Position numbers and translations under genes: made by a program. Of a DNA stretch of 64,000 nt, positions 25,066-51,854 are shown in pieces. The notes below the pieces were generated by a model. That model did not search any database, was not told the origin of the DNA, and saw only the letters and a program-made list of their open reading frames with translations. Source of the stretch: Lepidodermella squamata (taxonomy: Eukaryota; Animalia; Gastrotricha); assembly GCA_047495785.1 (NCBI GenBank), contig JBLDXI010000031.1, forward strand, positions 310,001 to 374,000, in the 5' to 3' direction. Within the stretch, counting starts at the first letter, position 1, and each line of letters opens with the position of its first letter.

Positions 25066-25080
25066 ACACTATATTTCGGT

Positions 25081-25098
25081 AGCGCCAATTTGCGCCAC
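25081..25098 (+). repeat. Left subterminal 18-bp direct repeat (partner at 53178-53195)
   Basis: AGCGCCAATTTGCGCCAC versus AGCGCCATTTTGCGCCAC, 17/18 identical. Confidence 0.8.
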
Positions 25099-26404: not shown

Positions 26405-26703
26405 AACTGTTCTCTCGTCTATTTTGAACTAACAATGTCTTTTTTGAGAAACTAGCCCACTTCTGTAATTTTTCGAGTCTCAATCTCTTGTACAGTTCGG
26501 TTAAAGTTTTGCCGCCGCTTTTTTCAATTATTCGCGAAGGTTACTTATTACTATTGTTATGAAAAATGACAGTCTTGTTTTTCGGCTGAACTAACAATTT
26601 TGATTTTGTGAGCTTGGGAACTTTTACTTTCAACGTAAATTGTTGCTTTTACGTGGACGTTTTTTATGATGTATAAAAAATAAAATCACGAGATTTCGGC
26701 TCC

Positions 26704-28004
26704 ATGGTTGAAGAAAACTTGGAAACCGACAAGCTTTCAATAATTAATTTTTGTGTTTTTTTGTTATTTAGAGCTTTGTTTTACATTGAAATTCTGCATC
26801 GCATGGCGGTTTTTCTGTCGCAAGCCGCGCTCGACAACCACGTTCGCGCAGAGATCTCGCGCCAGATCCCGGCCAGCTTCGCCGATTCTATGCTCGCGGC
26901 GACTTTGGTACCGCCGATCATCACCGCTCCGTTTATCGCCCCTTCAGGGTGCTTGCAGTCTCGGTCGGAAATTTGCCTTTTCCCGACAGTCCCGTTCTGG
27001 GCACAACAACAAGCAGCTGCCTATCAAATGCAAATGCAGTTTCAGCAAGCCTCCTCGAGCTTTTTGCCACCTTTTTCACCCTCTCCGAAGCCTAAAGAGA
27101 CCGGGCGCCGCGAAAAAATCTGCCGCTTTTGTAACACCAAGCGAAGCAGCAACCACTTTCAACGGCACGTTCGGAATTGCAAAGCGGCGAAAGCCAGGAA
27201 TGTCTCGATGGAGGAGCGCGAAATTGCCGCCACTATGGGCATCACGGCGGAAGCCCGCGACCGCGATGCCCTGCTAGAAAAGGTGTCATCCAAGGTCGCC
27301 AGTGTCGTGTCTAGAGGCCTCTCACGCGAGATACGGCCAATCAAGTGTCCGAATTCTGTTTCGAAACTTCCCGTCATCGTCGAGCGAACAGCTACATCGA
27401 CTACGTCGGGCCAGCTTAAGCAATGCAGCGAACATTTCAAGACGCTAATTGAGCTGTATCACGGTGGTAGTCGCTACAGATGGCTGCCCAAGAAGAAATC
27501 GAATACCAGGAAAGCAAAGAAAACTCGTCTCGCGTCGATTTTCACTCTATCAAGGACCTACAACCTCGAACAACTGGAGAGTTTCGACCACTGGGATCGA
27601 TTTTTCGAGTCGGGTGGCGCCATCTTACGTTTGAATCAGCCGAAAGTTGTCAAAAAATCGAAGGGCAAAAGCAAGCCGGCTACAGTCGGTCGCCGTGCCC
27701 AGTACTCTCGGATCAAAGAGCTAGGCGACTTTGTTTCCTGGCTTGCGGCGAATGGTCACATCGTCGAATCTCCGAAGCTGAAATCATTGCTCTTGGATAC
27801 AACGTCGCAGCTTCTCCAAGGCTCAAAACGAGAAAGCGGCCTCAAGAAAACCGAAAGAGCGAAGTTTGCCCATGACATGGAGCTACCGATGAAATTTTAC
27901 CAGCACATCGACGAGCTGATCGCTGAACGCCGAAAGGGGCTGAACCTTTACGGGCTCAAAATCGCTCGAATTGCAGTTGCGGCCAATTCTCATACCGGTT
28001 GCCG
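26704..28004 (+). CDS. Tyrosine recombinase exon 1 (C2HC zinc finger, ends inside the catalytic Arg codon)
   Basis: Zinc finger CRFC-x12-H-x3-C. The ORF ends NSHTGC-CG followed by the consensus donor GTGAGT at 28005. Alternative start Met at 26803. Confidence 0.8.
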
Positions 28005-30162
28005 GTGAGTAACAGCTTCGTCTTAATTTTTCAAACATAGCGCAGCCGGTTTTTCCTTTGGATTAACGATGAATCATGATTGAGTCATCAGAGCGTCATT
28101 TGGCTGTAGTGAAAGAATCGAAGTTTTCTCCGCGATTCTTCGCGATTCTTCAATTTCAAGGTGTTTTAAGGCGATTTGGAGCCTGTTACTACCTGCTGCA
28201 TCCGGAAACGGTTTCCTCAATAGCACCCGGTTCAAAAAAATTACGCCACTGATAAATCAGCAATATCATTTTATTTCGGCCGGCCATCGCGGCCATCGCC
28301 GTGAAAATAAGAAGGCAATTGGAGAAAAATAATCAGATTCACAACAATTATGCGCAATAAAATATTGACAGGAATGATCATAATTCAAATTTTCGCAGCC
28401 GGGACGATTTTGAAACCGCATACTTCCTACAAGATATCAATACTCAGTAAGCTTTGAGGCATTCATCAGCTGACAATAACCAGGTTTCCTAAGTGAAAAG
28501 TGAAAGTTACCTCAAAGTTGGGCATAGGTATTGACGCCAAAATTGAAGCAGGGAAAGAGCAATAAATAGGCATTAGAGGCACTGATAAAAAATCCGATTG
28601 AATTTAAAGCCGCAATATTTAATGGAAAATTAATACAATTACTCGAGGAATTTTCAGGCAGAATGAAAGCCGATTGAAAACAATTGATAGTGATAGAGAA
28701 TGTTCACGGCCAGCGGGGATTCTTCGCAGATCATAATAATATAAACAAGAATTTATTATTTGCAAGAATTCTTTGAAACTTTAAACGAAAATTTACAAAA
28801 TTGGTCGAGTCAGAAAGATGTAAGATTTTTCCATTTTTTTTTTTAATTTATTGTAACGCGGGAAAAATTATAGCCATGGTTGGGAATCTGGAGGCATGAT
28901 TTTCGCTAAAATCTGAGAGATTCGAACTCCATTTTTGAGGAACGAGAAAAAGATTAATTAATAGCGCAGTTTCCTACACTAACGTTTAAAAAATAATGAA
29001 AAATTCTACATTTTTTTCTGCACAATGAGACATCAGTACAGTCGTGTAGGACAAGGTGTCACGGCAGCATGAAATAGGAGCACGCACAAATTCATACATA
29101 ATTTACGTTATAGTCACGCGCGAGTAGTTTAATTTAGGTAAATTTAAAAACCACCTACTCACACGTTATAGCTGAAATTTTTTTCGAACATTTCTGGTAA
29201 AAGCTGTTATCAGAAGTAATTTAAACGAAGAGATAATAACATCGCAGTCGGTTTGAAAAAAAAGATGGCATATTAAATGCGACCATAACTACTGCAGTTT
29301 TGCGCGCAAAGTTCGAATTCACTAGAGCGTGTCGCATTGAATTCAGACCTGTACAAGGTGGCTAAAAAGTGCGTAATTTTTGCCGTCGCTAATCAGACGT
29401 ATTACAGTCAGTGTGAGCAACTTTTCACAAGTTCTGTAGATCTTGAAAATCAGACATCCTGGTGCCGAGTTTGAGCCCAATTCAGTTATGACATCGATTT
29501 GCGCTTTTACCGCCGATACTCGGGGTTCACGTTACAAGTGAGGCTCCAGCAAGAGAATTCTCAACAATTTTTGCCTGGGATTGCGGGGTAGGTAATTATA
29601 ACGCCACGTGCGGTAAGCTAACGAGAAAATACTAGGGCCTACAGAGCCGATACGGACGGATTTATGCATTATTTGATAGAAAATCATTTTTCAGAAATTT
29701 CAGTAATCGATTGCAGATTGCAGCATCGTCATATTTTCTACATAAATGTATAAATCAGACGGTACCTGGTACCCAAAAATGAGGAGAGGTTATAATGTCC
29801 ATACAAGTTGCTTATCAATATTGTAACGCATAAAATGTTGATAAAACGACGCGAAAACGTGTAGCAGCGCCAAGGCTTGAATTCAGTACTGGAGCCTCAA
29901 ATTGCTGAGAGCTGGGTTCCAATTTTTTATTAATAAAAGCCGTATAACCGCAGCTCTCAGTGCATGTTCTGTGGCGTGTTCAATAAGGGTTAAAATTATG
30001 GTATCAATTGGCCTAATAAGCCGAATTCAACTAAAAGAAGATATCATCACATATTATCGAATGAGAAAGTATCATCTGAGTATGTGGCCGAAAGGAAATT
30101 CAGCACTGGCTTGAAATTATTGCTCGATTTTCGATCGCACACACCGGATCGTCAATCAGATG

Positions 30163-30430
30163 TTCCATAGCTGGGCGTTGGTTCGGTAGCATGCAGGAAT
30201 GACAGCTGAAATAAAATCAGATATTAAAAAAAATAGAAAACGCAAGAAATTTTAAAATTTAAAATTGAATTATTTGAAATTTTGAAATTTTAATAAAATT
30301 CCATAGCTTGGCGTTGGTTCGATGGCATGCAGAAACGAGCTGAAATGAAATCAGATATAAGAAAAATGGGGAACGCGAGAAATTTTAAAATTTAAAATTT
30401 TAATATTTGAAATTTTGAAATTTTAATTTA
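30163..30430. repeat. Two-copy diverged tandem repeat, ~135 bp
   Basis: TTCCATAGCT(G/T)GGCGTTGGTTCG...GAAATTTTGAAATTTTAAT occurs twice. Confidence 0.75.
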
Positions 30431-30748
30431 AAAAATGGATGATTAGAAATATTTAAATTTTGAATGACATCGAGGATCAAGGCAATAGACAAATTCAGGA
30501 AATTTCTTAAAAAAAGAGGTGGAAAATCTGATAAATTACCGAGCTTTCTGTAGACTATATCGATATCGAAAGCCAGTAAGCTGCACGCACTCATCGGTCA
30601 AAGCATCACCAATCGATCGGCTGCTTTCCAATCTAAACAAAAATAAGAATATCATAGATGTTGCAATTTTTCATTCATAATGGCGCCGTTACAGTAAAGC
30701 TGGGAGCAGGGGGAATACCAGGTTAAAAATTTGGCAGTTGCGCAGTAG

Positions 30749-30877
30749 GGGTCTATTTCATCTGCTCGCGGAATATTTGTTTTTCATTGTGAAATTCCAT
30801 TTTTCTGATTTAAAATGAAATTAAAAGAAATTTCACAATGAAAGAGTCAATTTTCCGCGAACCGGTGAAATAGACCC
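30749..30877. mobile_element. Small foldback MITE (PIF/Harbinger-like)
   Basis: TIR GGGTCTATTTCA / TGAAATAGACCC, largely palindromic body, TAG on both sides. Confidence 0.55.
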
Positions 30878-33800: not shown

Positions 33801-34977
33801 TTGAATCAAGCGAATTCGCCGAAACCATTCAACCGTGAAAATTTCGTATAAATCGAATACTGTTTTGGCAATCGTCCTTTTCGATTGCCCGGCGAGGCTT
33901 TGTAGCCCTCTAGCTTCGTTCAGCCAAATCCTTATCATGACACAACGATGACCCGAAAAGCATCGGTATCTACTTCGTCAATTTCTCTCTAAACCTATTT
34001 TCCCGCAATTTTACCGCGAACGAAGCGCGGTCAATGAGGTTGCATCGAATTCATCCAGCCGTTGCTACGCAGCTGGTGAGGTTCTTGTTGTTCTCGTCTC
34101 TTGCCTTCTTGGGGAAGCATTGAGCTGGAAGCTTCAAGTTTCGTTGGATCCAATTTGGTACTCGTGATCTGATTGAAAGGTCAGCTATTTCTTTCTATTA
34201 TTTCTCCGACTGATTATTCATCAAATATTTGTAAAACGGGCCTTAAATCAACGACTTGTGTCTTGTGTTGAATTTTTTAGCAAATGTTCTCTGAAATTTG
34301 TAGCTGTCGTCATATTTGCCCCGGACATCTCCCACGCTTGAGCTCCGCTAAATTTATTGATTATTTAAAAAAATTATAATTTAAAAAATATTATTTTTTC
34401 TTTGTTATCCATTTTCAGCCTCTATTATAATTTTTTATAACGACTAATTTTATGCCCCTCGTCAGCTTCGATCACCTTGGTTTAAATTTTCCAGAATTTT
34501 TCGCTATATCTCCACCCACATTTCTCGGCGACCTCAGGCGTGAATTAGAGCCCTCGAGCCTTTTCTCCCGGATTATTCCGAATTTTTCTAAATTCATAAA
34601 CTGTTTTTGAAAAATTCCCGGAATGAAGAAAAATGCTAGAGGTTCTATCGTGATTTTCAGGGGGAAAATAAATACAACAGCTTGAAAACAACAGTTGATT
34701 ATCTTCTGATGAAATTAAGCTGGATCGTTTTCTAGCGGGTCCAATTATTCCGAAAATAATTCCAAATATTTCCAAAAAATAATATATTCAGTTTCTTGTA
34801 TTTTAACTCAGGCTACCGTAGCCGCTGATACCCGATACAATTTGAAATGAATGGAATCGGAGTCGAAACTAAAACGATCGCAAATCGGGGACTCTAGTTA
34901 ATTCGAACAATGCTCGGATTGTCGGCTAAAAATTACCAGAAAATATTCTGCGACTCGATTTCTAAAACCGGCGTGCT

Positions 34978-35534
34978 GAGGTGCGTTTTTTATTAAAACC
35001 GAGGTGCTATTGTTCAGCGCTGTGATCAATTTTTCGGTGAGATTCGCAACAGAAAAATCACAATCGGCACGTCTATCATGAACTGACCGGCTCGAATTGC
35101 GGTCAAGGCCGGTCAGAAAAGACAAATCCCCGCGCGGATTAAGAACATTTGGCCGCGGCTAAATCTTGACATGGCTGTAATTAATTTACGGCCATGCAAC
35201 ATGTGACCCTCGTTAATTTCTGACCCCATGTCTTAAGAGCTAATTTTATCCAAACTACGCAGAAAGGGTTTTTATTTTCTCTGCAATTATCGAACATGAA
35301 ATCGATTTTAAAAAAAATCGATCAATTTGGTAAAATTTATGAAAATCCAAAGCGTTTTAGGCGATTTCTGACCATTATTTTGAATCCAAGGGTGCCGACA
35401 AGTTCGAATTTCTTAATTTTAAATTTTTGAGTTTTTGATGGGGTTTGAGAAGCTCTAACTTTTCGTGTGTCATCTGGTGTTAATTGATGTAATTAGTCTT
35501 CAGCACACCACGGTTTTAATAAAAAACGCACCTC
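34978..35534. mobile_element. MITE with GAG...CTC termini (Sola-like, tentative)
   Basis: 24-bp perfect TIR GAGGTGCGTTTTTTATTAAAACCG. Flanks TGCT / TGCG. Absent from the paralogous block near 48330-48375. Confidence 0.65.
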
Positions 35535-35825
35535 TGCGAGCGAGCTCGTCGGAATGACTCAACCGTGACGGTATTTACAATTTACAAGTCATTGTGCCTT
35601 CAGTCGTCATTGAGAAGTCGCAGGCGGGCAACAACTTCAGCCTGGACGAGACAAATTTCCTGTTCAATCAGTCTTGTTAAAGGTAAGAATGTAGCTATAA
35701 TTTTATCGTATGGATTTTCATCGAGAAATTTAATGTTTTACAAGTTCGAAAAATATCCCACTCCTCTCTATTACTTTCTACTCTAGTATTTTCTCTATCC
35801 AAATTATTTATAAATTATTTTGAAA

Positions 35826-36457
35826 GATACTTTAATCCGCAGCAATTTTTTTCTTTTCGCAGCAAATTTGTTCTTTCCGCAGCAATTTTTTTTTCTCGCA
35901 GTATCACTTTCTTTTCGCAGCAAATCAACGTTTTTTCCGCAGTAAATGCTAATTGAATAACTAATTGAAATAACATAGCCACCGAACTATATTAAGGCTA
36001 TTCAATATTTAAAATGTATACCCGTACATGTACATGTATCCCGTGAAGAAATGCCTCAAAAACCTTTAAGAAATAGCCCCACAATGTTTCTCGTTGGGCA
36101 AATCTTAATGCGGTATGAAATTTCATTTAACTCAATACCTAACCAGGTTAGTCGGTTATTCAACTGGTTAGGGTTAGGTTAGGGTTAGATGCTGGGTCTT
36201 AAAATCGGGGACTTTGAACGGATTGGTATATTTTGGTATGAGGATATTTCAAGACTCTAAGCCGTCCTAGATTTTCATTTTCGTTTACTATTATTTATAT
36301 TCCCCGTTCTTTTCCTATTTTAGCTAATAAAAATAAATTGCTGCGGAAAAAACGTTGATTTGCTGCGAAAATAAAGCGATACTGCGAGAAAAATAAATTG
36401 CTGCGGAAAGAACAAATTTGCTGCGAAAAGAAAAAAATTGCTGCGGAAAGAAGTACC
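35826..36457. mobile_element. Foldback element with ~115-bp inverted arms made of ~20-bp subrepeats
   Basis: (TT)CGCAGCAA-type repeats at ~35836-35942 are mirrored at ~36335-36450. Absent from the paralogous block near 48610-48650. Confidence 0.7.
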
Positions 36458-36852
36458 GTCCATTATTTTTTATGAATATCTGGCCGTAATCAATTAAGGT
36501 GAATTCAGCTTGGTGTAGATTATTTCGATTTTTTTCTTTTTTCTCCATGATTTGGTGATGATTCGCGACAACTCAGCTGCTAAGATGCATCTTACGTTGT
36601 GACACTTCTTGATTCGCAGGTGATCATGATCGAAATTTTATCTAGCTTTCAACTTTTAACGAGCCTCGCTGTGATTTTTGCATATTTTTAGCTCATTTTA
36701 GTTGACAATTGATATCGTGAAAAACAGGGCAGCCAAACCTTTCTATTCCTCCTTTTAACGTCTTATGTTATGCCTTTCCTCAGCTTCAATCACCTGGGTT
36801 ATAAAATTCGTTTTTTCACCATACTCACCCACATATTTTAGGCGGATTTACT

Positions 36853-37505
36853 TGTCATCGGATTAAACACTCAACACCAATACGTTTCAAAAGGTTTATT
36901 CATATTTTCAATACCAGCTACCGGTTTCAAGCCACCAACGCTCGAACATCAGAAATGAGTTACGACGCACCTCCGTACGCAACAATAATTCGTAACTACG
37001 CATCAGCAATCTCGAAATACGCAATAGGAAATCGATCAGCAATCGATTCAAAGATAATGCGCAATCAATACGCAATAGGAATAATGACTCATCTCCATGA
37101 TGCAATCGATACGTCATAATAATTATGACTCATCATAGCTTCGACTTAATAAATATGAATCATCTATAGAAAGTACTATGATGGATCTTGGCAATATTCC
37201 AATGACGCAGTAGCATGAGCCTATATAAACTCCATGTTTCTCATTCTGTATCAACTAACTAACAAGCTTAACTAGCAGACCACTAGAACTAGCAAAGCTA
37301 ACGGCTCACGAGCTTTGATTAGTTTATGACACTAGAGTTACGTGTGCTACTAACTGTCGACGAAGTCATCCGAAGACTTCTGCCCTGTGTCACCGAACAA
37401 GTGTCGCAATAAAATATCAAATACCAGAATTAATTCTCTATCTGTTATTCGAGTTGATCAAGCTACTGGTTTGATATAACTCTGTTCTAATAGATAGGTG
37501 TGACA
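36853..37505 (+). repeat. 5' LTR
   Basis: TG...CA ends, internal TATATAAA and AATAAA; repeated at +9369. Confidence 0.95.
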
Positions 37506-37510
37506 TATTC

Positions 37511-37523
37511 TGGTGGCAGCGGT
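37511..37523 (+). other. Primer binding site, probably tRNA-Leu
   Basis: TGGTGGCAGCGGT just after the 5' LTR, complementary to the ...ACCGCTGCCACCA 3' end typical of tRNA-Leu. Confidence 0.75.
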
Positions 37524-37697
37524 TAGCGAAACCACCCCAATCACAGAACAATTACGGCGCAACACGCTAGAATTGACATTTATCGCCCAAATCGGAAGAA
37601 GAACCTCAGGTTCAAAAAGGCAACTCAACGAGTCAAACAAGCATTGATTCTTTACTACAATATTCGCTACAAACAAGTAACCAGCACATGGTAATCG

Positions 37698-38684
37698 ATG
37701 GCACACACCACTCTAGAATTACAAAGATGTCTTCACGCTTTGCCGAAAATCTCGAGCGAATCACCAGAAGAATTCGAGGAAAGCTGGCAGCATTTCAGCG
37801 CTATTGCCATAGCATGCGGAGTAGACGACACCGCAGCAACTCGCGACGTATCAGCCACAGCGATACCAGACGAAACAACACGAACAGCAGCAGCTACAGC
37901 CCAAACAGCAGCAAGGGACAAAATTCGCATGGTTTTGAAAGTCTTGCCTGCATATCTGCCGGCTAAACTGCTCGAAATTTGGGAAGCCGAAAACCGCGAT
38001 TCGGTCTACAGCTTAAAGGCGGCAAAAGAAATACTGGCCAAAGGAGCCCATTTGGAAGTCGACAAAGCTGTCGCTGAGGTTCGATTTCAAAACAAAACTC
38101 AGCAACCCAGCGAGACAGTCCGAGATTTCCTTGCAGCTCTCAGGAAGCTGATGAAGTTAGCCGACCCGGAGGCAACAAAAGCCATCCAAGACGCAAAACT
38201 GCTTGCTCGCTTCATGGCAGGTCTACGACCAGACCTTCGAATCGCCGTCTTCAAAGCAAGCGGCGACCCAGCTACGCTCGAAAAAGCCGTTGAATTGGCC
38301 GAGCGAGAAGAACGAGCGCTTAAACTTGGCGCCATCGGCACTTCACCAGTTATCGGCAATATCACAGACTCCACGACACCATTGTTAATCGGTCTGTTGA
38401 CACAGCAAATAGAGCTGCAAAAGAAAAAGGACGAAAAGTTAGACCAACTAGCAGATAAGATGGAAAAGCTAAGAGTTGGGGAGCCGGAGGATCGACCATT
38501 TCGGCGCAACAATAACTCTTTCCGTGGCAATAGCAACGGACCGGGACGGTTCAATAACCAGAGAAGACGACCCGTTAAATGCTATAACTGCGGAAAGGAG
38601 GGCCACATCAAACGAAACTGTCGTCGCCCAACAAAAAGTGAATCCGAGCTCAATAAACCCGCCGAGCAGGACTGGGGAAACTAG
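37698..38684 (+). CDS. gag: Gag with CCHC zinc knuckle
   Basis: 328-aa ORF with QQPSETVRDF and CYNCGKEGHIKRNC motifs. Confidence 0.93.
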   Translation: MAHTTLELQRCLHALPKISSESPEEFEESWQHFSAIAIACGVDDTAATRDVSATAIPDETTRTAAATAQTAARDKIRMVLKVLPAYLPAKLLEIWEAENRDSVYSLKAAKEILAKGAHLEVDKAVAEVRFQNKTQQPSETVRDFLAALRKLMKLADPEATKAIQDAKLLARFMAGLRPDLRIAVFKASGDPATLEKAVELAEREERALKLGAIGTSPVIGNITDSTTPLLIGLLTQQIELQKKKDEKLDQLADKMEKLRVGEPEDRPFRRNNNSFRGNSNGPGRFNNQRRRPVKCYNCGKEGHIKRNCRRPTKSESELNKPAEQDWGN

Positions 38685-38736
38685 GAAGGGCCGGTGTAGC
38701 AAACGGGGGAACGCCGTCCCAAAAGCCAAACCCCGC
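38675..38736 (+). promoter_or_regulatory. -1 ribosomal frameshift signal (slippery heptamer plus predicted H-type pseudoknot)
   Basis: G GGA AAC immediately precedes the gag stop; pol is in the -1 frame and open from here. Stem GGGCCGGTGT / ACGCCGTCCC, and loop CGGGG can pair with downstream CCCCG. Confidence 0.8.
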
Positions 38737-38749
38737 ATTAATAGCTCAA

Positions 38750-41700
38750 GTGGGTAAAAACAGTGTTAAGGGACTAGCCGTAGAATTTACAGTAAACAAT
38801 AATAAAATAAACGTTCTAGTCGACACGGGAGCCGCTAAAAGTTGTGTAAAGTCTAAGTACCTACCCAAGGGAACTCTGACAAAGAAGGCAACGGCAGTAG
38901 GCCCCGACGGCAAGCCCCTCAACCTGGCAGGAGAAGCAGAAATTCTGTTTCAACTGGGACCCCATTCCTACAAGCACAACTTTCTGTTTGTAAATAATTT
39001 ATGCACAGAAGGGCTCTTGGGCGCAGATTTCCTAGGAAAATGCACCACCAAGGTCAACTGGTCTAAAAGAGAAATCAGCCTCGACGGAAATAAAATACCG
39101 CTGAAGGAACTTAACCAGACCATACAAGTTAACCAAGTGGTCATACCAGAAGCCCTAGAACCCATAAGGCTAGTAAAAGCCACACAAATAGCCCCGGAAA
39201 CGGCAGCGCTAGTGGAAGGACACGCGGACATACCGGACGGTAGGGTAGGCATTACAAACCCTATCGAGCTGGGAGGAGAACAGCCCGCATACCTAATAGG
39301 TCACGCACTGGTCCGCGCAAAGGAAGGGAAAATAGTAGTGCCCATCCTAAACGTGTCAAAATGCCCGCTAGTCCTACACAAAGATCAAAAGATAGCTTAC
39401 CTAGAACAGGTCGCCGAGTCCGAAATCCCCAACAAGACAGCTCCGATCATCAACTCGGTAGGAACAGAAGTGCAAAAGAAAGCAGAACAAGCCACTGTGC
39501 CAGAAGGTATCGACTTAAGCTCACCACAGTTAACAGACAAGCAGAGGGAGCAGTTGAAGGCCTTGCTCATCGAGTACAACGACATCTTCTCGAAAGGAAA
39601 GCGGGATCTCGGCAAATGCAATGTAGTAAAGCACGAAATTCGGACCACGGGAAGACCGGTAAAGCAGCTACCGCGAAGAACGACGTTCAAAGAACGCGAA
39701 ATCATCCGAAAGGAACTGGACGAAATGCTAGCTGCCGGAGTCGTCCGACCAAGCACAAGCGGATGGGCCAGCCCGATCGTACTCGTGCCCAAGAAGGATG
39801 GTTCCGTACGCTTTTGCATCGATTTTCGGAAATTAAATTCCATGACGGAAAAAGACGCATTCCCGCTGCCCCGGATCGACGATACACTCGACGCCCTGTC
39901 GGGAGCAGCCTGGTTCACAGGCATCGACCTTGCATCCGGGTACTGGCAAGTCGGACTCACGGAGGAATCAAAACCAAAGACGGCATTCTCAAGTCCATTT
40001 GGTTTGTTCGAATTTTGCGTACTCCCATTCGGAATCAGTAACGCACCGGCGACGTTTCAAAGACTAATGGGATACGTCCTGAACGGACTACTCTTCGAAC
40101 GATGTTTGGTATATTTGGACGACATCTTGATATTCAGCCGAACATTCGAAGAACATCTCGACAGCATCCGACGGGTATTCGATCGACTAAGACGCGCAGG
40201 ACTGAAAATAAAAGCGTCTAAATGTCATTTCGCACAGCAAGAAGTACCATACCTTGGCCACATCGTGACTGCACAAGGGGTGAGACCGGACGAAGGAAAG
40301 GTCAAAGTAGTCCGCGACTACCCAGCACCACGCGACATTACGGAGGTCCGAGCATTCCTCGGTCTAGCCTCGTATTACCGCCGCTACGTACCTGATTTCG
40401 CAAAAATCGCGGCCCCACTAACCGCGTTGACTCGCAAGTCAGAACAAAACTTTCGTTGGTCAAGCGAAGCGCAAGAAGCCTTTGAAACCTTGAAGCAAAA
40501 GTTGATAAGTCCGCCTATATTAGCATATCCAAGGTTCGACTTACCCTTTCGGGTTTACACAGACGCTTCCAACTTCGCAGTTGGCGCTGTCCTAAGCCAG
40601 GTACATGACGGTAAGGAGGTGGTGATCGCCTATGCCAGTCGCACGCTTAACAAGACGGAGCAGAAGTACTCGACAACAGAGCGAGAGCTGCTTGGTGCGA
40701 CGTGGGCCATTAAGACGTTTCGACCGTACTTAGCGACGCGACACCAAGGAGGAAAGTTCGAATTGATCACGGACCACAATCCACTGGTCACCATTAACAG
40801 ATGCCGCGATGTCGGAGAAAAGCTGTCACGATACCAGATGTTTTTACAAGAGTACGACTTCGACTTCATCTATCGTCCTGGAGCCAAACACGCCAACGCA
40901 GACGCTTTGTCAAGACGACCCGAACCCATAAACGTCGTAGGTCTCCAAAGCGACCCCGATGTAATCGTCGCCCTAGAAGAAATAAAGCAAGCTCAACAAA
41001 AAGATGATTCCTGGAAAAAGGCAAAACTCTTACATAATTCCAAAGGAGTAATTGTAAAACTCGGCAACGATAACCGTCCATGGATACCGCCAGCATTACA
41101 AGACAGAGTATTGAAAAGCTTGCACAACGATGTGAATGCAGGACACTTGGGACTCGATCGTACCCTGGATCGCGTTCGACAACGATTTTACTGGCCAAAG
41201 ATGGAAGAAACAATTGCTGACTACGTCCGGAAATGCCATGACTGCCAACAACGAAAAGCGCCAAACGCGCACCCGGTCGCTCCCCTGTAACCAATTGACA
41301 CAACGGAGCCAATGGCACTCGTAGCATGGGACGTAATGGGTCCAATCCAACCTACAACAAAGAAAGGCAACAATTACATTCTGCTAATAGGCGACCACTT
41401 CACAAAATATATCGAGGGATATCCGCTTAAAAATATTACAGCCGAATCAGTGGCTGATTGTTTGCTCGACTTTGTTTTTAGGTGGGGGCGCAGCCAAATT
41501 TTGCTGAATGACAACGGTCGAAACTTCGAGGCCAAGCTAATAAACGATATCTGCGCAATCCTGGGTACTAAACACGTACACACCACACCATACCACGCTA
41601 TGAGCAATGGGTTTTGCGAGCGCATGAACAAAACAGTACAGGATATCATAGCTAAATATCTGACTCCCGCTACGCAATTCGATTGGGATGTCTATCTTAA

Positions 41701-42715
41701 ATCAGCGCTATTTGCGTATAACACCAGCACGCACGACTCAACATCTTACGCACCATTCTATCTAATGACTGGCCGGCACGCAAAGCTACCGATAGACGTA
41801 GCCATTCAAGAGCCAGCATTCAGTCATGAAATCCAAAACCGTAGTGAGTACGCACAAAAAGTCTACACACGCTTACGCACCGCATTCAAAGAAACGCGGC
41901 AAAAACTAGCGCAGGCGCGCGCACGCCAAAAGCGTACATACGATCAAGGAAGCAAAAACTGCGAGCCTTTCCAAGAAGGCGAGCTGGTGTGGCTGCATAA
42001 CCCAGTGGTAAAAAGAGGGCAGTCTGCGAAATTCCATTGCGCATGGCGCGGCCCGTACACGGTCGTAGCGCGCTACGGAGCGCTCAACTACGCAATACGA
42101 CTGTTTAACGGTAGCGGTAAGGAAAAAGTAGTACATCGCAACCGCTTAAAAGAGTACTATGGCGATGTCCCGGCTCAACTAGATAAAATGACCGAATTTG
42201 AGATAGCGCAACAGCAACAGCGCAACTCACGCAGCACAACGCAGACCACATTACAAAAGAAAAGCCGCACATTGCAACTGTTACCCGCAGACGAGTATGA
42301 CATAGAACAATGGAACACTGAGGCATCGGCGCCTAGTCTGCCAAACAATAACACGTCAAATCAAGCGCGCACGGTCAGCGCCGAAGAGCTACAGAGGCTG
42401 TTAGCGCACCAACCGATAGTGCGAATGGAGCCAATACAGACTACGCAATACATAACATACAGTGAGGCAGCAAGCAGAAACCTGCCCAACATCACGCCAC
42501 CACCACTGCCAGAAATAGCATCTGGGCCCACCATGACACCACAAAACACCATAACGGCCTCAGAACCCAGCTCTGCAGAAACAGGGATCACGTGTAAAAC
42601 GAGTGGAAGCAGCAACATAATACACAGAGAGTTACCGGCAAGAGCGGCTAAACTGGGAAAATGTTACAAAGAACCGCGCATAAACGAATCTATGTACCAG
42701 AAATCGGACAAGTAG
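38750..42715 (+). pseudogene. pol: Pol (PR-RT-RNase H-IN) with one in-frame TAA at 41288-41290
   Basis: LVDTGA, YLDD, YTDAS, HHCC finger and DDE core are present. ORFs 38750-41290 and 41312-42715 share a frame. Confidence 0.92.
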
Positions 42716-42907
42716 CCGAAAAAGGAGGGAGAAATATTCAAACAAAAAGAAAACTCGCTAGCAAGACGTCTTAAAATTTCCCGGGAAGAGCGCTTACGAG
42801 CAACCTTTCTTTTTGATTGAATAAGGAATTGACAGCTCGAAGGCCGGAGCGCATAAACTACGTAAGGATAAAATTACAGAGACCGTATTCATCAACACGA
42901 TTGGACA

Positions 42908-43420
42908 ATGTGCAACTACATCGCTTTAGGAAAGAACGTGCTGCAGGCACTAGCGCTCATCGCGATGGTCACGACGACCGCGTTCCTGATTTATAAAACT
43001 GTAAGCGGGTTGGAAGCGCTAAAACAAGAAATACCGATCGCCGCTATGATAGCCGCCGAGCCCGCGCGCACATCAATAAATGAAACGCAAGTGGCTCCGT
43101 GCGCAGTCGCTAATGAACACGCAGATAATAATACCGACGCGCTCAACGCAACAGGCGCGGCCGCACCCTGTGCCGAGGTGTTAACCGACAAAAACACTAC
43201 CGGCATACCAGGGCACGAGCCGATAAAAATAGTAACAAGCCGTTGCGGAAAGACCGTTCTGGAACAACGCTGCGAAACGTTCGAAAAATGCGGCGTAGCG
43301 CTATATAAGGAGCTGATAGTTCAATGTTCCGACATTTATGAAATCGACTTGGAAATAGACCAGTGCGTCTACTACCGCCTCATCGGTGAACTTGCTTGCA
43401 TTTGCAGAAGCGCGCCTTAG
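42908..43420 (+). CDS. Gypsy accessory ORF A: N-terminal TM segment, Cys-rich putative glycoprotein, 170 aa
   Basis: Hydrophobic ALALIAMVTTTAFLIY, NxT sequons (NET, NNT, NAT, NTT), many Cys. Confidence 0.6.
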   Translation: MCNYIALGKNVLQALALIAMVTTTAFLIYKTVSGLEALKQEIPIAAMIAAEPARTSINETQVAPCAVANEHADNNTDALNATGAAAPCAEVLTDKNTTGIPGHEPIKIVTSRCGKTVLEQRCETFEKCGVALYKELIVQCSDIYEIDLEIDQCVYYRLIGELACICRSAP

Positions 43421-43499
43421 CCTAAGCGCGTAGTGCAAGAACAGCAAGTTAGCCCTAGCTCTACAAATTAAACTTGAATAACGTACCTAGTAGAGCTTC

Positions 43500-43721
43500 A
43501 TGGCGCCACATGAGGTACCGCTTGTCACCAATTATCAATATCGCCACAACTGTATACCCGAAATTCTTGACTTCTCGTTCACGTCGCTCTTCGACTTATT
43601 TGAAAACCAGACTAACTTCGATCATGACGACTGGCCTGATGATGGCGAATTAGAAGAATATTCGGCGCCATTGTCACCCAGCGTACCATGGGACACACTG
43701 TCACCAAGCATAACTAATTAA
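43500..43721 (+). CDS. Gypsy accessory ORF B, acidic, 73 aa
   Basis: ATG-initiated and co-oriented with the neighbouring ORFs; no recognised domain. Confidence 0.35.
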   Translation: MAPHEVPLVTNYQYRHNCIPEILDFSFTSLFDLFENQTNFDHDDWPDDGELEEYSAPLSPSVPWDTLSPSITN

Positions 43722-43796
43722 CCAATTAACATTGCATCCTAGATTCGAACAACTAATTGTTAAACTAACGCTCAGGCATAAAGAATTACCTCAACC

Positions 43797-44378
43797 ATGG
43801 ACGTCAACACTGGCAACCAAAACGACAATCGCGCAAGCAGCGATCTCGAGCGAAACCAACGGGCGCTGCGATTGATACTGACTTTCTTTACGATCGACGG
43901 GTGCCGCTGGCGCCAGAAGCAGCGCCAGCAGGGCCGGTATAATTTCAAGCCGGTGGACCATACAATAACCGACCCCATTCGGCTGTGGTGTAATGACTGG
44001 CTATTTACATCCAGTCTGGAGCGGTCCCTGCCCGAGCAGTATCCGGAGCCCGGCTGGGAAGAAGGACGGCCCGACGAAGTCTGGGTCTGGTGGCGGGCGT
44101 TAGCAGATCAGGCCAACTTCCATTTAATGGTCGAAGCTCTGCATCGCCCAGACGTGATCAAACAATTCGGCCCAGAAATTATCGCTTGCCTTCAAGTCTG
44201 GTATCAAAACCAGACCGTCCTCGCGCAATTAAGGGAAACGTTCGGAGGGGAAGAAGTCGCCCGATGCTGCTTCGACCTCTTCGGCACGGAGCCTAGCGGA
44301 CAACCCAGCCAGCGCGGACCGCCACGATTGCTCGCCGTCATCACACCAACACAGCGACAGACTCCTGCAGACCCGTAA
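43797..44378 (+). CDS. Gypsy accessory ORF C, Trp-rich, 193 aa
   Basis: Good start context (ACCATGG); GC-rich open frame between AT-rich spacers. Confidence 0.6.
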   Translation: MDVNTGNQNDNRASSDLERNQRALRLILTFFTIDGCRWRQKQRQQGRYNFKPVDHTITDPIRLWCNDWLFTSSLERSLPEQYPEPGWEEGRPDEVWVWWRALADQANFHLMVEALHRPDVIKQFGPEIIACLQVWYQNQTVLAQLRETFGGEEVARCCFDLFGTEPSGQPSQRGPPRLLAVITPTQRQTPADP

Positions 44379-44646
44379 AAACTGCTCACCCAGGACTCGA
44401 AAGCCACAGCGATCCGCAAAGTTGTATCCCTGGAAAACAAAAAGCAAAATTGCTAACAGGCGTCTGTTACATTGATACCTTGTTAAATAATACTAGTCAA
44501 CTATCAAAATGATATTATACTCATATCCTGGCATGACAAGTAAATAACTAAGGCATAATAAATAAATAAGCCTGGCCTAATGACTTATGTCTTCAACTTG
44601 TTAGAACTCTGTTACCTCAATATAAAATTAATTTTCAAAACTCACA

Positions 44647-44946
44647 ATGGCTCTGCAAGATCGCGCCGCGGCCCTGTACAGGCAACCGACGACGGTGCCC
44701 GAACTCAGAGCTTACCTCGACTTTGCATTCGGGGAAATTCTGACGAGGGTTGACCACTTCAACCCGGTCGGCTTCGATGGTCGGCCGGTCAGCCCCATAG
44801 GGACAAGGATTGTACCCACAATCCTTATTTTCCTCGAGACCTCGTTCGAACTGATACTACTCGTATTAGATACTATCTCGCCAACCACAACGCCTGCAAC
44901 GTCAGAGGAGACGTTGACAAATGGTTCACCCATGATGGAAGAATAA
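44647..44946 (+). CDS. Gypsy accessory ORF D, 99 aa
   Basis: ACAATGG start; GC-rich block after an AT-rich spacer. Confidence 0.5.
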   Translation: MALQDRAAALYRQPTTVPELRAYLDFAFGEILTRVDHFNPVGFDGRPVSPIGTRIVPTILIFLETSFELILLVLDTISPTTTPATSEETLTNGSPMMEE

Positions 44947-45178
44947 ACAGCCCCGTCACAACAGAGGAACTTCATAATGTTCGACCATAGATAACCAACC
45001 ATGACAGCCATACTAGCACCGACAAATCATCACAAGAAGCCGACTCATTAAACCATAAGCTCAGTCTTTACTGTTTTACAAATCTAGAACCTAGAAACAA
45101 TAAAAGGAAAAGGCAAAATTTAAAACTTGTTAAACTTAATATAATCTATAATCTTAGAATTTTGAAAAATTATTATCA

Positions 45179-45775
45179 ATGGCTGCCAAAGTTTCCAAGA
45201 AAGAACTGTCGCCATCCAAGATGGAATCGCGGCGTTACCGTTATGCTCGCGAGTATCAAGAGGCCACACCAGAGGAACGAGTCCGTATGGACCGGACAAA
45301 GAGACCGGCTCCATATGATCAACTCTACGCCGAAAGTATTCCCCTAAGATCGAAATACATATCGCGAGAAGAAAAGCAGCAAGAAGAAGAAGCCATTGCG
45401 CTACGAAGAACTTTGGCTGGAGAAGCAGCCACGAGCAACGGGATCTATCGTCTAAGCAAGCAACCACAGGAAGAGACCCAGAGGTGCTCACCTAAGATCC
45501 TGGTACCAAAATTGGCGGTCGAAACTATGCCGAATCTGAGCGCAAGTACGACTGCAGTAACAACAGGCCAAGAGAAGGAGGTAGCAGGACCCGTAAGGGA
45601 CAATCACTATGTGCAAACACAGCCAGCCCATGTGTTCAACATGCACGTAACAGATGGCAAATTCAACATAAATTTGGACACAGTGGTCCGGATCCAGCAT
45701 GAATTCCCGCCAAAGGCCGGATGCGTATCAGTCTGGTCACCCGAAACATATCAACAGCAAGAACCGAAGTGGTAG
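45179..45775 (+). CDS. Gypsy accessory ORF E, charged, 198 aa
   Basis: ATG-initiated open frame bounded by AT-rich spacers. Confidence 0.55.
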   Translation: MAAKVSKKELSPSKMESRRYRYAREYQEATPEERVRMDRTKRPAPYDQLYAESIPLRSKYISREEKQQEEEAIALRRTLAGEAATSNGIYRLSKQPQEETQRCSPKILVPKLAVETMPNLSASTTAVTTGQEKEVAGPVRDNHYVQTQPAHVFNMHVTDGKFNINLDTVVRIQHEFPPKAGCVSVWSPETYQQQEPKW

Positions 45776-46221
45776 AAAGAAGAGCGTAAAAGATGAACAC
45801 TGCGTGAACTTCCCTATGTCACCCATTAAAACCTAGAAACGATTTAGATAAACAAAATACGAAAATTGTTAGTAAAAGCCCTAGAGAACTAAGTAAAACG
45901 GTCGTTTTAATAAAGAAACCTGAGTGGACAAAGTTTTGAAGAGTGAAAAACCACCAAAACCGCTGAAAAATCACGTTCACCTACTAACTTAAACCTGCAA
46001 CTTTTTCTCGAAAACTCCTGAGAAATGTGAAGGAAAAATATATTTTAGCTAAATAAATAATTATTGATGCTAAAATAATATTTTAAAAATATTTTAAAAA
46101 TTGTTTTACCAAATAAAATTTAGTTTTCGCCGCAGGATTCTGGAATTTTTGCCAAAAATCAACCGACGCGTTTTGAAAAGTCGCCATCATTTCGGGACGA
46201 AATGTAAAGTAACGCGGGAGG

Positions 46222-46874
46222 TGTCATCGGATTAAACACTCAACACCAATACGTTTCAAAAGGTTTATTCATATTTTCAATACCAGCTACCGGTTTCAAG
46301 CCACCAACGCTCGAACATCAGAAATGAGTTACGACGCACCTCCGTACGCAACAATAATTCGTAACTACGCATCAGCAATCTCGAAATACGCAATAGGAAA
46401 TCGATCAGCAATCGATTCAAAGATAATGCGCAATCAATACGCAATAGGAATAATGACTCATCTCCATGATGCAATCGATACGTCATAATAATTATGACTC
46501 ATCATAGCTTCGACTTAATAAATATGAATCATCTATAGAAAGTACTATGATGGATCTTGGCAATATTCCAATGACGCAGTAGCATGAGCCTATATAAACT
46601 CCATGTTTCTCATTCTGTATCAACTAACTAACAAGCTTAACTAGCAGACCACTAGAACTAGCAAAGCTAACGGCTCACGAGCTTTGATTAGTTTATGACA
46701 CTAGAGTTACGTGTGCTACTAACTGTCGACGAAGTCATCCGAAGACTTCTGCCCTGTGTCACCGAACAAGTGTCGCAATAAAATATCAAATACCAGAATT
46801 AATTCTCTATCTGTTATTCGAGTTGATCAAGCTACTGGTTTGATATAACTCTGTTCTAATAGATAGGTGTGACA
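46222..46874 (+). repeat. 3' LTR
   Basis: Copy of 36853-37505, preceded by the purine-rich GCGGGAGG. Confidence 0.95.
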
Positions 46875-47675
46875 TACTCAGGCGTGAAGTAGAGCCTTTT
46901 CTCCTGGATTTTTACGATCCATAAACTGGTTATGAAAAAATAACACAAATGAAGACTTATTCTATCGTGATTTCAGGGGAAAAATAGCGTAAAAATATTA
47001 TATAAAGATACCAGCCCTAAATGCAAAACACCGTTAAATTTGGTGGCTCTAATTTTTCTCCTAGACATTTTTACGCCCATTTTCAAGTCGATTCACTATT
47101 CACATCTTCATGTCTCCGCGCCTCTTATTTTATTATTTAATTACTCTACGTGATTTTTTTTTATAGATAACGCTTTATCAAGGCATGAGGATTTCAAGGC
47201 CGGCGTTTGACTCGGCTGGCTCACAATGCGCCTATAAATTCGAAAAACTTGGAAATTTGTGGGAGTGGACTCGACTGACTTGGCTCGAATTCCCCAAAAG
47301 CATTCAGCATTGAAAAATTTCGGACGAACCAGTCTGTTTAAGGAATCGTTCTCTCTTCAATTCGTCGCCCTTGAGTTTCGTTCAATCAAATGACGTCAGA
47401 CCAGACACGGCGATGACCCGAAAATTATCGGTATATGCTGAGGCCTGAAACGCGGAATTCTCTCAGAACAGCTACATTTTCCCGCATCTCAACCGTGAAA
47501 ATCGCGCGTTCAGAGAGAGCGATCTCCAAACGAAATAAGCCGTGGCCACATTTGCGCTGCAGCGATTGGCCGATGCCGTTTTCGTTGATATTGTATTTTT
47601 GGAAATGCTAAAGCCTCGACTTTCGGTCGATTCTGTTACTGGTGACCTGACAATAGGTAAGCTACCTAATTTAAT

Positions 47676-47989
47676 CGGATTATCTTTCAGCGGAACCTAA
47701 TTTGCTTTTTGCGGAACCAAACTGGAAATCTGCCAAGAGTCATTATTTTCATATTTCTATGAATTCTAGGCTAAGCCTGAATTCTGAATTGAACACTGCG
47801 TTCTGCGTTTTATGGAGAATGTTGCGCTGAATTCACAGGTGAATTTTCTAGAATTATTGTGGCCAATCTTGACCTGCAATAAATATCCGAAAAGCGATTT
47901 CCGGCCACTAGAAAAGTCTAAAATTTGGTTCCGATACAGCAAATTTGGTTCCGCTCACCGTAAATTTGGTTCCGCTAAAAGGAGGACCC
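47676..47989. mobile_element. Mutator-like MITE
   Basis: 9-bp TSD TAATTTAAT (47667-47675, 47990-47998) and imperfect TIRs carrying GCGGAACC / GGTTCCGC repeats. Confidence 0.6.
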
Positions 47990-49093
47990 TAATTTAATGC
48001 CTCATATCGATTTTTTATTTTATTAATTTGAGAAACCGGTGGGGAATTTCATTTCGGCAATTCGACTCATACATTCGGTAGATTCATTCAGGCGTGACGT
48101 GAAGTCTCCGAGCTTCAAATAATTTAAGAACAGTTCATTGTGTGACAAAATTAATAAATTCTAAACATTATAATCAGTTCATTTTATTGTTAATCCCAGG
48201 CAACCCCAGCCACGAGCCCCGACACTACCTGGTGCAATTTTTGGAATCGGAGTCGGAATGAGACGCAACGTTAATTCGAGCTATGTTCGGACTGTCGGCA
48301 TGTCAGTAAATTGGCCTGCGACTCGGTTTAAAAATGTCCACCCGAAAACGAATTTATCAGACACACCGCAATCACTCGACCGTGACGGACTTGCTGTTGC
48401 AAGTCTAATTTGAGCCTTCAGTTGTCACTGAGACGTCGCTGGCTGGCAAGAACTTCATCCTGGACGGGACAAATTTCCAGTTCAAGCAGGCTTGTGCAAG
48501 GTAGGCTAGTAGCAGTAATTTTTTCGCTTTTATTTTTATCACGAAATTTATTGAAATTGGTAATGCTGTGCGACTGTGAACATAATTCCACTCTTCTCTA
48601 TTGTTTTCCGAATTATTTAAAAATGAAAAATTAATACCTAAGAATATCTTGCCGTAAAAAATCAATTAAGGTGACTTCTCGGATTAGATTTTCAAATGTT
48701 TTCTTGGATTAATTTTGTTTCATAATTTGGTGATAATTCGTGAAAACTCAGTCACGAATTTCCATCTTACGTTGTGAAATTTTATTCGCTGGCGATCGGG
48801 ATCGGAATTATCAAGCTTCCATCAAGCCTCGCTGTCATTTTTGCTAATTTTCACCATTTTGTACTTTATTATTAATTTCTTTAAAAATACGGCAACGAAA
48901 CCTTTTTATTGCTGATTGTAGTACATTCAAGAATTTGAATCATACGTTATTAGGTCAGTTTTTTGAGGCAGAGATTCTTTAAAAATTCCATTAATGATTG
49001 ATTACGTATTTAAAATCAACCAAGCGTGACAGAATTACTATTTGGACCATGTAAAAGAAGTTGAAGTTGAAGCTGAGCATAGATAGACATTAA

Positions 49094-49675
49094 CCCGTTA
49101 ATGCCCGTAACTATTTTTCATGAATATCATGACGAAAACATTATTTCCGACTTAGGGTGCTATGGAACATTTTTACAAGCAGCTCAAGCTGAATCCAACG
49201 ATATATAGATTACATAGGGTCATTTTCGAAGTATATTTATATATATTATATGCTGTTACGTAATACATATAATATATAGCTAAGTACTTGAATTCCAATG
49301 GAAAACCGATTTGACAGGTGTCAAATTCCGAAATTCGGTAATTTAATATGCTAATTGGTAAATTCATGGTTCTTTTTGCATAAAATTCGGCATTTGACAA
49401 ATTTTATTTTGGCCAATCATACCAGGGTTCCATTTGGCACCGATTTCCCGTAAATCACTCCTAAAGGTATCGATCGGATCAAATCGAATCCTTCGATTTC
49501 GATCGATCGATATTCCGAGGCCCGATCTGATTACCCCCTTGATATGGATATCGTTGGATAGGAAATTTTGTATAGGTTCGGGAAGGTTCCCTCAATTTCT
49601 TTGCCCGATAATTCGTGAATCCACTAGAAGCCTCAGAGCACGTGTCATCTATATAGGACGCCGGGCGTGAATGGG
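49094..49675. mobile_element. piggyBac-like MITE
   Basis: TTAA on both sides; imperfect 14-bp TIR CCCGTTAATGCCCG / CGGGCGTGAATGGG. Confidence 0.65.
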
Positions 49676-51166
49676 TTAAGACGCTAATTCCAATTTTCTC
49701 GTAGAAAACTGTCGATTTTTCCGTCTCCAACACGGCGTTTCCCTCATATTTTGGCGTCGTTTTACAATAGGCCACCCTAATTATGGCCGCTTGGATTATA
49801 CCTATAAATCATCTTCAATTTCCGCATCATTCAGACCTAGAAGATTGTGAATTTTCTGCTTTGAGTTGGATGCATAATCATCTCACGCTACTAAATTGTG
49901 TAAGGTCTTGCTTGATCCCTCAGCTAGCTTTTGCGCGAATAATTTGCAATTCAAATATTCCTTCGTTTACAGGAATGAATTCACTTCTCCAATCTCCTAT
50001 TGCAAGCCGAAAATGGGTCGATTCAACTTCAGCCGAGAACCCTTCAATCGAGGATGTCTCGCAATCACCCTGAGATCCTGAGGAAACTGCCGAACGTAAA
50101 TCGAAATCGATTCGCCCAGCTTCGAAGACCAGCATTTTGTCAAATCCACCAGAGTGTAATCGCTCGTCTTGTTACATCACAAAATTATGCTGCACGTCCG
50201 CCCGAAGTTTCTCAGACTTCATCGAACTTCAAACTCGATTGTTCATTGCTTCGTAACTCATTTCGCAACTGTTGACGATCCTTTTTAGCTGGAACTGCTT
50301 TTAAACATGACGAATCAATAAAAGTTTCATAGTTTCACTCAAATACCTTCAAAAAGCCTCGACTTCGATCTATGAACCTTAGCAAATTCTTGCATGAAAC
50401 ATCACTTGGGTTCATTCCTTCAGTTTTCAGTTATTCTTGATCACTGGAACCTTTCAGTTCCAGTTTAGAACATTCAGTATCCTGTTTTGAAGTGACAAAC
50501 AGCTAGAATAAACATATCTCCGACTGCTGCCATGAAAAACCGGCTTTAAATGCATCAAAACACCGAGTTCAAACCTTGGTTTGCTGGTTGAACCTCGAAC
50601 ACGAGAAATTTTTACGGCGGCGTCGCCCGTTGCCATGGAAACGGCTAGTCAAGGTCGCGTTACTATAATTTTATTTTTCCGATAACTATTTTGATGAGAT
50701 AAAATTATTTTTAAGAATTAACAGCGACTTAATTAACAAAAATTCGCGTACAATAAATCCCACTTTTGTAGGAAAAACAGGCTGCGCTATGAAGATTCAA
50801 CAAACGTGAAAAATTTTTAGTAATTTTTTATCGATCATTTAAATTATTTTTCCAAATTCCATTTCACGTCAAAAAGCATAAATTTCTAAAAAAAATCGTG
50901 CGATCGGGCATTTTTCAAATTTAATTTTAATTTAATTTGAGGGCAATTTTCAAGTTCAAATGCATAAATTTCCAAGGTTGAATTTGATCGGAAATTCCAT
51001 CAATCCTTAAAACAAACAAATCACCGATTCTGGAATCGATTATTCGCTTCAGTTTATTTCGCTCAAGTATTCAAATAATTTGGTGCTCACCACCGATTCA
51101 GAGGTGGACAAAATATTCAAGGTTTTATCATTTCCAGCTTTTTCATCGTCATTTTTTATTTTTCAG

Positions 51167-51854
51167 AGCTTCTGGAATTCGGAAAATGAAACTTACTGAG
51201 TGGAAAGCGAGGGATGGCGATGCTGATGGAGAAGGTTGGGTTTGTGTTGAGGTAAAAGGAATGAAAAACTCGATTTCTGGATTCCCGTTCGTCACCTTCG
51301 ACCCCGCAACAGCCGCCTTAATTCAAAGCTACATCGATAATGACCGGCCGGCGTCGAAAAACAAGCGGGTTTTTTTGACTCAAAAACGAACAAGAATCAG
51401 TTCCTCGACGCTGAACGAGTACGCAAACCTCGGTTGGCCGTCGTTCAAAGAAAAGTTTCAGCCGAATTTCAGCCGGCCGCTCAGTGATACCTTTACACTT
51501 ACCACCCAGCGCCGAGCAATCAATACTACTACGCGTTCAGAGAAGGACCCCGACCAGCCGCCTCAGGCCAAAGTTAATCAGGCGTTGGTGCAAAGTGAGC
51601 CCACGGGCGAGTCGGTCTATACCCTCACCGCTGCAGTTTCGGAGGCGATCGGGGTCGCAAAATGGGCGTACTACAAGTGTGCGAACCGCCTTGATCCGTC
51701 GAACCCAGAGCTACGCCCGTTCGCATACAGGCCTGTCAAAGCCGTCCCGCTTTCATCAAACAACACCGAGGGGTCTAAGGAGTCGAAGGATAGTGAAGAC
51801 GAAAATTCCTCGAGCGAAGACGAAAATTCCAGCAGCGACGATGACTGCTGCTAA
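51167..51854 (+). CDS. Tyrosine recombinase exon 2 (catalytic domain)
   Basis: Acceptor TTTTTTATTTTTCAG ends at 51166. Splicing to 28004 gives TGC-R-ASGIRKMKLTEW in frame, then VKGMKN, RP...VFL, TTQRRAINT and ALVQSEPTGESVY. Spliced protein ~662 aa. Confidence 0.82.

Follow-up and report, generated by a model that had tools for sequence, protein, structure and literature searches.

A Crypton-like tyrosine-recombinase element in Lepidodermella squamata whose old intron has probably been enlarged to 23 kb by a recent nested insertion

Results

Recombinase gene and splice junction

We analyzed a window of 64,000 nucleotides (nt) from the gastrotrich Lepidodermella squamata (assembly GCA_047495785.1, contig JBLDXI010000031.1, positions 310,001 to 374,000 of the forward strand). 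The window contains a Crypton-like tyrosine-recombinase (YR) element, now 28.1 kb long (25060-53204, plus strand), and its recombinase gene is divided by an intron of 23,162 nt. Exon 1 (26704-28004, plus strand) encodes a zinc-finger-like motif (CxxC..HxxxC), a helical core-binding domain, and a helix leading to the catalytic Arg. It ends in ACC GGT TGC CG (protein end HTGCR), of which the terminal CG begins the Arg codon, and is followed by GTGAGT. Exon 2 (51167-51854, plus strand) begins by completing the Arg codon with one base and then stays open for 228 codons; it encodes the catalytic domain (Lys at 51264, Arg at 51510, and Tyr at 51618) and an acidic tail. The donor CG/GTGAGT starts at 28005 and the acceptor TTTTCAG/A ends at 51166, which makes this a phase-2 intron within the Arg codon. 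If unspliced, the exon 1 open reading frame (ORF; 26704-28008) reaches a stop codon right after HTGCR.

Splice motifs of this kind are not rare, and the intron holds eight further TTTTCAG and eight further GTRAGW sites. All eight internal TTTTCAG acceptors lead to a stop within 28 codons, and the long frame opens only from 51166 and from a duplicate acceptor at 59322. An acceptor AG at 51067 lies in the same frame as exon 2; it was rejected, as it would add 33 non-homologous residues directly after the Arg. The join between the two exons is taken as fixed because exon-by-exon homology, searched separately for each exon of the spliced model, meets at the Arg, unlike bare motifs.

An exhaustive phmmer search with exon 2 found 15 relatives; a word-index homology search with the same exon gave no match, and a scan of JGI metagenomes did not find a locus. 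Five of the 15 relatives are single ORFs of 398-633 aa that are uninterrupted at the junction (for example, ..LTGVRPSG..). Against a family profile built on intronless relatives (A1), exon 1 covers columns 19-211 and stops at the catalytic Arg (E 7e-11); the alignment of exon 2 picks up at column 213 (E 6e-38). Contigs L001, L002, and L011, from marine metagenome assemblies, represent one element type and are counted as one independent case. SRA accessions adjacent to those of its samples belong to metagenomes of Antarctic seawater (PMC13638183). In L001/L011, exon 1 has 381 codons, is 32% identical to exon 1 of the window over 413 aa, and ends at the same TGCR. A 54-nt GT-AG intron follows the second base of the same Arg codon, and the exon behind it has 51% identity to exon 2 of the window. 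The phase-2 join of donor 28005 to acceptor 51166, predicted in an earlier reading of the sequence alone, is thus borne out by the profile alignment and by the 54-nt intron at the identical codon. Because of this small phase-2 intron in L001/L011, the intron position is, by this comparison, old within the subfamily, and its normal size is small. The sequence-only reading had proposed a comparison of intron length in other copies; among relatives the length is 54 nt in this one and nil in distant ones, and the giant size is not a family trait. The true start of the recombinase may be Met34 (26803), because L001/L011 aligns only from residue 28 onward.

The same reading had put introns of 53-58 nt in a host gene of the window and a roughly 400-fold difference in length. 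Both agree with our measurements: a small host gene at 4.2-5.2 kb has introns of 58 and 53 nt, and the recombinase intron is about 400 times longer. This host gene (4166-5200) encodes a small, Cys-rich, secreted-type protein and sits among piggyBac-like elements and decayed retroelement pieces.

Recombinase fold and catalytic residues

Exon 2 matched the Pfam Phage_integrase profile weakly (E 0.13, from profile position 34), and a PDB sequence search with the family profile returned no recombinase. An intronless natural relative, P0002, was folded from an alignment of 12 sequences with a mean confidence (pLDDT) of 76. The top 48 Foldseek rows for this model were all tyrosine recombinases (XerA, Cre, XerH, Tn1549, and lambda integrase), with a best E of 5e-4. 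In a structure-wide search it matched XerA at Z 11.6 (root-mean-square deviation 3.3, 168 residues), and its Atlas neighbours were bacterial XerC/D and unnamed chordate clusters. The single-sequence fold of exon 2 had a pLDDT of 36 and was uninformative.

No aligned relative departs from the R at the end of exon 1 or from K33, R115, and Y151 of exon 2, and the window recombinase has the catalytic residues in the order Arg, Lys, second Arg, Tyr. The sequence-only reading had claimed a hidden tyrosine recombinase in two exons, with Lys, second Arg, and terminal Tyr following the first Arg; profile alignments, the Xer/Cre fold of P0002, and the invariance of these residues uphold both claims. In alignment with the relatives, the window recombinase keeps neither the canonical His of H-x-x-R nor the second His/Trp. 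At the first position the window has T, where relatives have N, G, or Q. At the second, the window and L011 share Q, and P0002/3/5/9 have H. Judged through its relatives and the predicted fold, the enzyme is securely a tyrosine recombinase.

Known recombinases with this architecture include XerA, XerH, Cre, and the Tn1549 integrase (PDB 4a8e, 5jjv, 1kbu, 6emy). The family shares with them the two-domain fold (core-binding and catalytic) and the R-K-R-Y order. It differs in its low identity to them (8-16%), and the window gene differs in its spliceosomal intron, its N-terminal zinc-finger-like extension, and its altered His positions. A viral origin was also considered and is unsupported; matches to viral folds are to generic integrases, with 9-17% identity.

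Borders and cargo genes of the element

The element sits in a GTCCCCAGA satellite at a GACAAATATCTGGGG site, of which 29 empty occurrences lie on the plus strand of the window. The target site is split at 25060-25065 and 53199-53204, with AATATC at both junctions. The left junction (25060-25082, plus strand) consists of AATATC common to the target followed by the left end of the element, and 16 of the 23 first element bases match L011 in register. At the right end, which includes the second AATATC (53189-53204, plus strand), the corresponding base of the relative is where the L001 contig ends. The termini of L011 align in register with those of the window, yet its junctions share only 1-2 nt; because of this, the 6-nt repeat agrees better with microhomology to the target than with a true duplication. 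The relatives L012 (1-50) and L011 (232-275), which are only 67% alike, both start with TCATCAT followed by GGCCCCA-type subterminal repeats. Because sequences this far apart have the same start, a constant left-end spacer is suggested.

Two genes accompany the recombinase. Cargo gene 1 (25460-26404, plus strand; 314 aa) encodes a signal-like N-terminus, a Cys-containing domain, and at least two hydrophobic segments. Its identity is 44-45% to L012 and to the gene that precedes the recombinase in L011. Neither Pfam nor the Atlas gave a match, and a resemblance to GEX1/KAR5 was recovered in neither of them. Cargo gene 2 (52472-52852, plus strand; 126 aa) encodes a Ser/Thr-rich stretch and one hydrophobic segment; over 26 aa its N-terminus has 54% identity to the ORF that follows the recombinase in L001/L011 and shares this architecture. 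In L011 all three genes recur in unchanged order within about 3.9 kb. Without the block inserted in the intron, described below, the window element is about 5.39 kb long and, as in L011, has three ORFs only; the recombinase is its sole mobilising enzyme, with no reverse transcriptase (RT) or DDE enzyme.

Distant members of the recombinase family, all intronless, occur on four further contigs from the same marine samples as L001/L011 (L003, L006, L007, and L010). A faintly similar homolog of cargo gene 1 lies upstream in L003 (E 7e-5), and L010 has a hydrophobic ORF at its end. Because of these two, the three-gene cassette may be family-wide.

Content of the intron

Most of the intron is an inserted block of 22,756 nt (28036-50791) with CA...TG ends and AA on both outer sides. 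It is bounded by terminal inverted repeats (TIRs) of 22 nt, one on the plus strand (28036-28057) and one on the minus strand (50770-50791), with 95% identity between the ends. Their 12-mer occurs only at the two block ends and in a duplicated copy described below (0.1 occurrences expected by chance). The native intron consists of a 31-nt 5' part with the GTGAGT donor (28005-28035, plus strand) and a 373-nt 3' part with a polypyrimidine run and the TTTTCAG acceptor (50794-51166, plus strand). Removal of the block and one AA therefore leaves a native intron of 404 nt.

The block contains a Gypsy-type long terminal repeat (LTR) retrotransposon (36853-46874) on the plus strand, the same strand as the recombinase. 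Its 653-nt LTRs (36853-37505 and 46222-46874) are identical to each other and contain AATAAA, and a TACT target duplication flanks it. Because its LTRs are identical, the Gypsy is, on this measure, very young. A single in-frame stop interrupts pol in the integrase (41288-41290). Three extra 3' ORFs at 42908-45775 (170, 193, and 198 aa) have no Pfam match; the product of the first has a hydrophobic segment at the N-terminus and a tail rich in Cys.

The interior also holds a piggyBac-like miniature inverted-repeat transposable element (MITE; 49094-49675, TTAA-CCC...GGG-TTAA) and other small inverted-repeat elements. An old internal duplication pairs 34435-36750 with 36753-36852 plus 46877-48913 at 68-77% identity, and the Gypsy splits the second copy. 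Both copies have an exon-like piece with a GT donor at its end (35683 and 48501), and these pieces are perhaps decayed gene fragments. No transposase ORF was found in the block outside the Gypsy.

DNA transposons of the CACTA/Mirage/Chapaev type have CA...TG terminal inverted repeats, a 2-nt target duplication, and a DDE transposase. The ends of the block and its AA flanks fit this type; no transposase ORF was found in the block itself.

DNA contigs at the insertion point

Contigs of one DNA run were compared over 25000-29200, with the longest pieces listed. Contig depth is 92 over exon 1, rises to about 1,500 at 28036, and drops to 200-450 over the first 500 nt of the block; other contigs carry foreign flanks joined at 28036-28039. 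Because of this jump in depth and these flanks, the block end is a dispersed, multi-copy repeat. A 1,764-nt contig with exon 1 aligned in full and stops exactly at 28035. Contigs of this run overlap by 30 nt (25910-25939; another starts 30 nt ahead of a variant at 26302). A stop at 28035, and not near 28065, therefore points to two different next bases, not to mere entry into a repeat. This branch suggests that an allele without the block exists.

Exon 1 is present in a single sequence form in the DNA run, and no second 28-kb copy was seen. The run does contain a second copy of the left part of the element with cargo gene 1 (25167-26400); it is about 5% diverged, has a 190-nt deletion (25951-26142), and stops short of the recombinase exon.

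Tandem duplication and flanking satellite

The sequence from 49233 onward is repeated at the end of the window (57389-64000, plus strand), including the acceptor (59322), exon 2 (59323-60010), cargo gene 2, and the right end. The tandem unit is 8,156 nt long (49233-57388) and begins inside the piggyBac-like MITE. There are no mismatches over the 6,612 nt visible, and exon 2 is thus present twice with 100% identity. Either a recent duplication or an error of assembly may account for this.

The satellite around the element (8300-25060 and 53205-56407) is large and complex, with subunits of 14, 44, 78, 109, and 123 nt and a 681-nt higher-order unit. Its core is GTCCCCAGA, it contains inverted segments, and it hosts the element at the AATATC site. 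At 56400-56420, on the minus strand, unrelated sequence meets the satellite at the same ATATC site, possibly where another element that uses this target ends.

Discussion

Relation to known elements

Cryptons are eukaryotic DNA transposons mobilised by a YR (Goodwin 2003; Kojima & Jurka 2011, PMC3212892). Under this broad definition the window element would fall among them, as a YR is its sole mobilising enzyme. It resembles them in having an intron in the recombinase, and may do so in its ends, with no TIRs of its own and a 6-nt repeat matching the target. Recombinases of Glomhoppers are often intronised (PMC13465315). Its ends have AATATC on both sides of the element and in the empty satellite site, in contrast to the 1-2 nt shared in L011; Crypton end repeats have been argued to be target microhomology and not true duplication (PMC13465315).

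The element differs from Cryptons in lacking above-threshold matches to DUF3504, GCR1_C, and Phage_integrase, in the replacement of both His (T and Q), and in the absence of the 6-nt repeat from L011. It also differs in its two conserved membrane-protein genes, which flank the recombinase; second genes described in Cryptons encode a DDE transposase, a C48 peptidase, or a helix-turn-helix protein (PMC13465315). The named groups CryptonA and CryptonF do not fit, since their domains (DUF3504 and GCR1_C, respectively) had no Pfam match in either exon or in nine relatives.

Starships, with their DUF3435 captain, are fungal YR elements that carry cargo, have short direct repeats, and accumulate internal transposons (PMC10104507), all of which resemble the window element. 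The window element has only a 0.89 Atlas feature match to DUF3435 and no Pfam match, and its recombinase is the second of three genes, as in L011, and not the first. It is also natively about 4-6 kb, with fixed cargo, in an animal host. Assignment to Starships was rejected on these grounds. A DIRS/Ngaro/PAT retroelement was likewise rejected; the sole RT is that of the Gypsy, a distinct element with LTRs, a DDE integrase, and a target duplication of its own, and L011 has no RT. No description of an element family with membrane cargo and altered His was found in the literature searched, and the underlying element family appears undescribed.

Origin of the giant intron and its consequence

Inflation of introns by transposable elements is a general phenomenon. 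Over a third of the coding Mutator-like elements (MULEs) of maize and rice hold nested insertions, often LTR retrotransposons (PMC3903597). The window element resembles nested MULEs in that nesting is a normal route of decay; it differs in that the stack lies in an intron and the coding frame is spared. The giant intron is real in the DNA, of ordinary nesting in origin, and particular to this copy. We consider it probable that a compact Crypton-like element with an old, small intron was swollen by a recent nested block, and that this copy is impaired more than it tolerates the insertion. The sequence-only reading had proposed that the intron absorbs nested insertions while the recombinase frame stays intact. 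Nested insertions do account for the length, and both exons are intact in frame against the relative; harmless absorption is not supported, since the load is recent, may be polymorphic, and includes a same-strand Gypsy with poly(A) signals.

Several points weigh against our reading. A 2-nt AA duplication is weak evidence in AT-rich DNA, and both TIR ends could derive from two separate repeat copies. The alternative continuation at 28036 comes from the end of a contig and was not seen among the contigs listed. The recombinase fold is that of the relative P0002, which is 31% identical to exon 2, and not of the window protein.

Separate repeat copies at the two ends would imply stepwise patchwork growth, with the two CATAG ends taken from different members of one repeat family and no single 22.8-kb element. 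The heterogeneous interior, with its diverged duplication (70-77%), MITEs, and Gypsy and no transposase, agrees with such growth, as does the fall in depth near the left end. The block ends are however the only two 12-mer matches in the unit, are correctly inverted, and have AA on both sides, and removal of the block yields a plausible 404-nt intron and a 5.4-kb element; we regard patchwork growth as improbable. Misassembly across repeats could also have produced the 23-kb spacing (or the 8-kb duplication) around a gene that really has a short intron. The 6.6-kb stretch duplicated without a mismatch in a repeat-rich region would suit this, and none of the longest contigs listed spans the junction of exon 1 with the block. 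A mis-join would create neither matched TIRs with AA flanks nor the Gypsy target duplication, and the branch at 28035 demands two real continuations, which leaves misassembly with very little probability.

The explanation with the largest claim on the remaining doubt accepts the nested block and holds that the 23-kb intron is efficiently spliced. The copy would then still make recombinase, the intron would be a safe landing zone, and the whole 28 kb might be mobile as one unit. The exons, splice sites, and ends of the element are all intact, and the insertion left the donor unharmed and lies 373 nt ahead of the acceptor. Insertions as young as these (identical LTRs) account for the intact frame without any selection. 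The Gypsy carries poly(A) signals and is in sense orientation, the DNA run holds exon 1 in one form with no second 28-kb copy, and relatives have a 54-nt intron or none. Intron definition also limits intron length in short-intron organisms (PMC2614967). We therefore judge efficient splicing unlikely. Correct splicing is instead rather likely to be reduced or lost in the allele that carries the block, because same-strand LTR poly(A) signals lie about 9 kb into the intron, eight decoy acceptors lie upstream of the true one, and host introns are short.

Proposed history

Cryptons have been proposed to excise and integrate through their recombinase at sites of short homology (PMC3212892). In the history that we favor, the original element would be about 5.4 kb long and consist of a membrane-protein gene, the recombinase gene, and a gene for a Ser/Thr-rich membrane protein. 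Its recombinase, to judge from the fold, the R-K-R-Y residues, and the element ends, would bind both ends, excise the element, and integrate it at AT-rich sites with short homology. The recombinase of this subfamily would carry an old phase-2 intron in the catalytic Arg codon, 54 nt long in the relative and about 404 nt here before the insertion. The element probably entered the satellite first, and the TIR block then entered the intron 31 nt behind the donor. The Gypsy would have entered the block shortly before or after the block inserted. The exons would have been left untouched, so that the frame looks intact. The 23-kb size would be a recent accident of this copy and, given the contig branch, is probably absent from another allele.

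A more far-reaching interpretation is an undescribed animal family of cargo-carrying YR elements with a conserved Arg-codon intron that is spliced even at 23 kb and with mobility as a 28-kb Starship-like vehicle. We consider this improbable; if true, the element would keep its enzyme while swallowing other transposons in a short-intron animal.

The locus offers a clean natural test of the limit of splicing in a short-intron animal, since the same gene has an intron of 54 nt in the relative, 23,162 nt in the window, and about 404 nt in the putative empty allele. The element matters more than its intron. It belongs to a Crypton-like lineage that Pfam does not detect, in which the His positions are non-canonical, the termini conserved, and two genes for membrane proteins fixed; the lineage is present in Lepidodermella squamata and in marine metagenome contigs.

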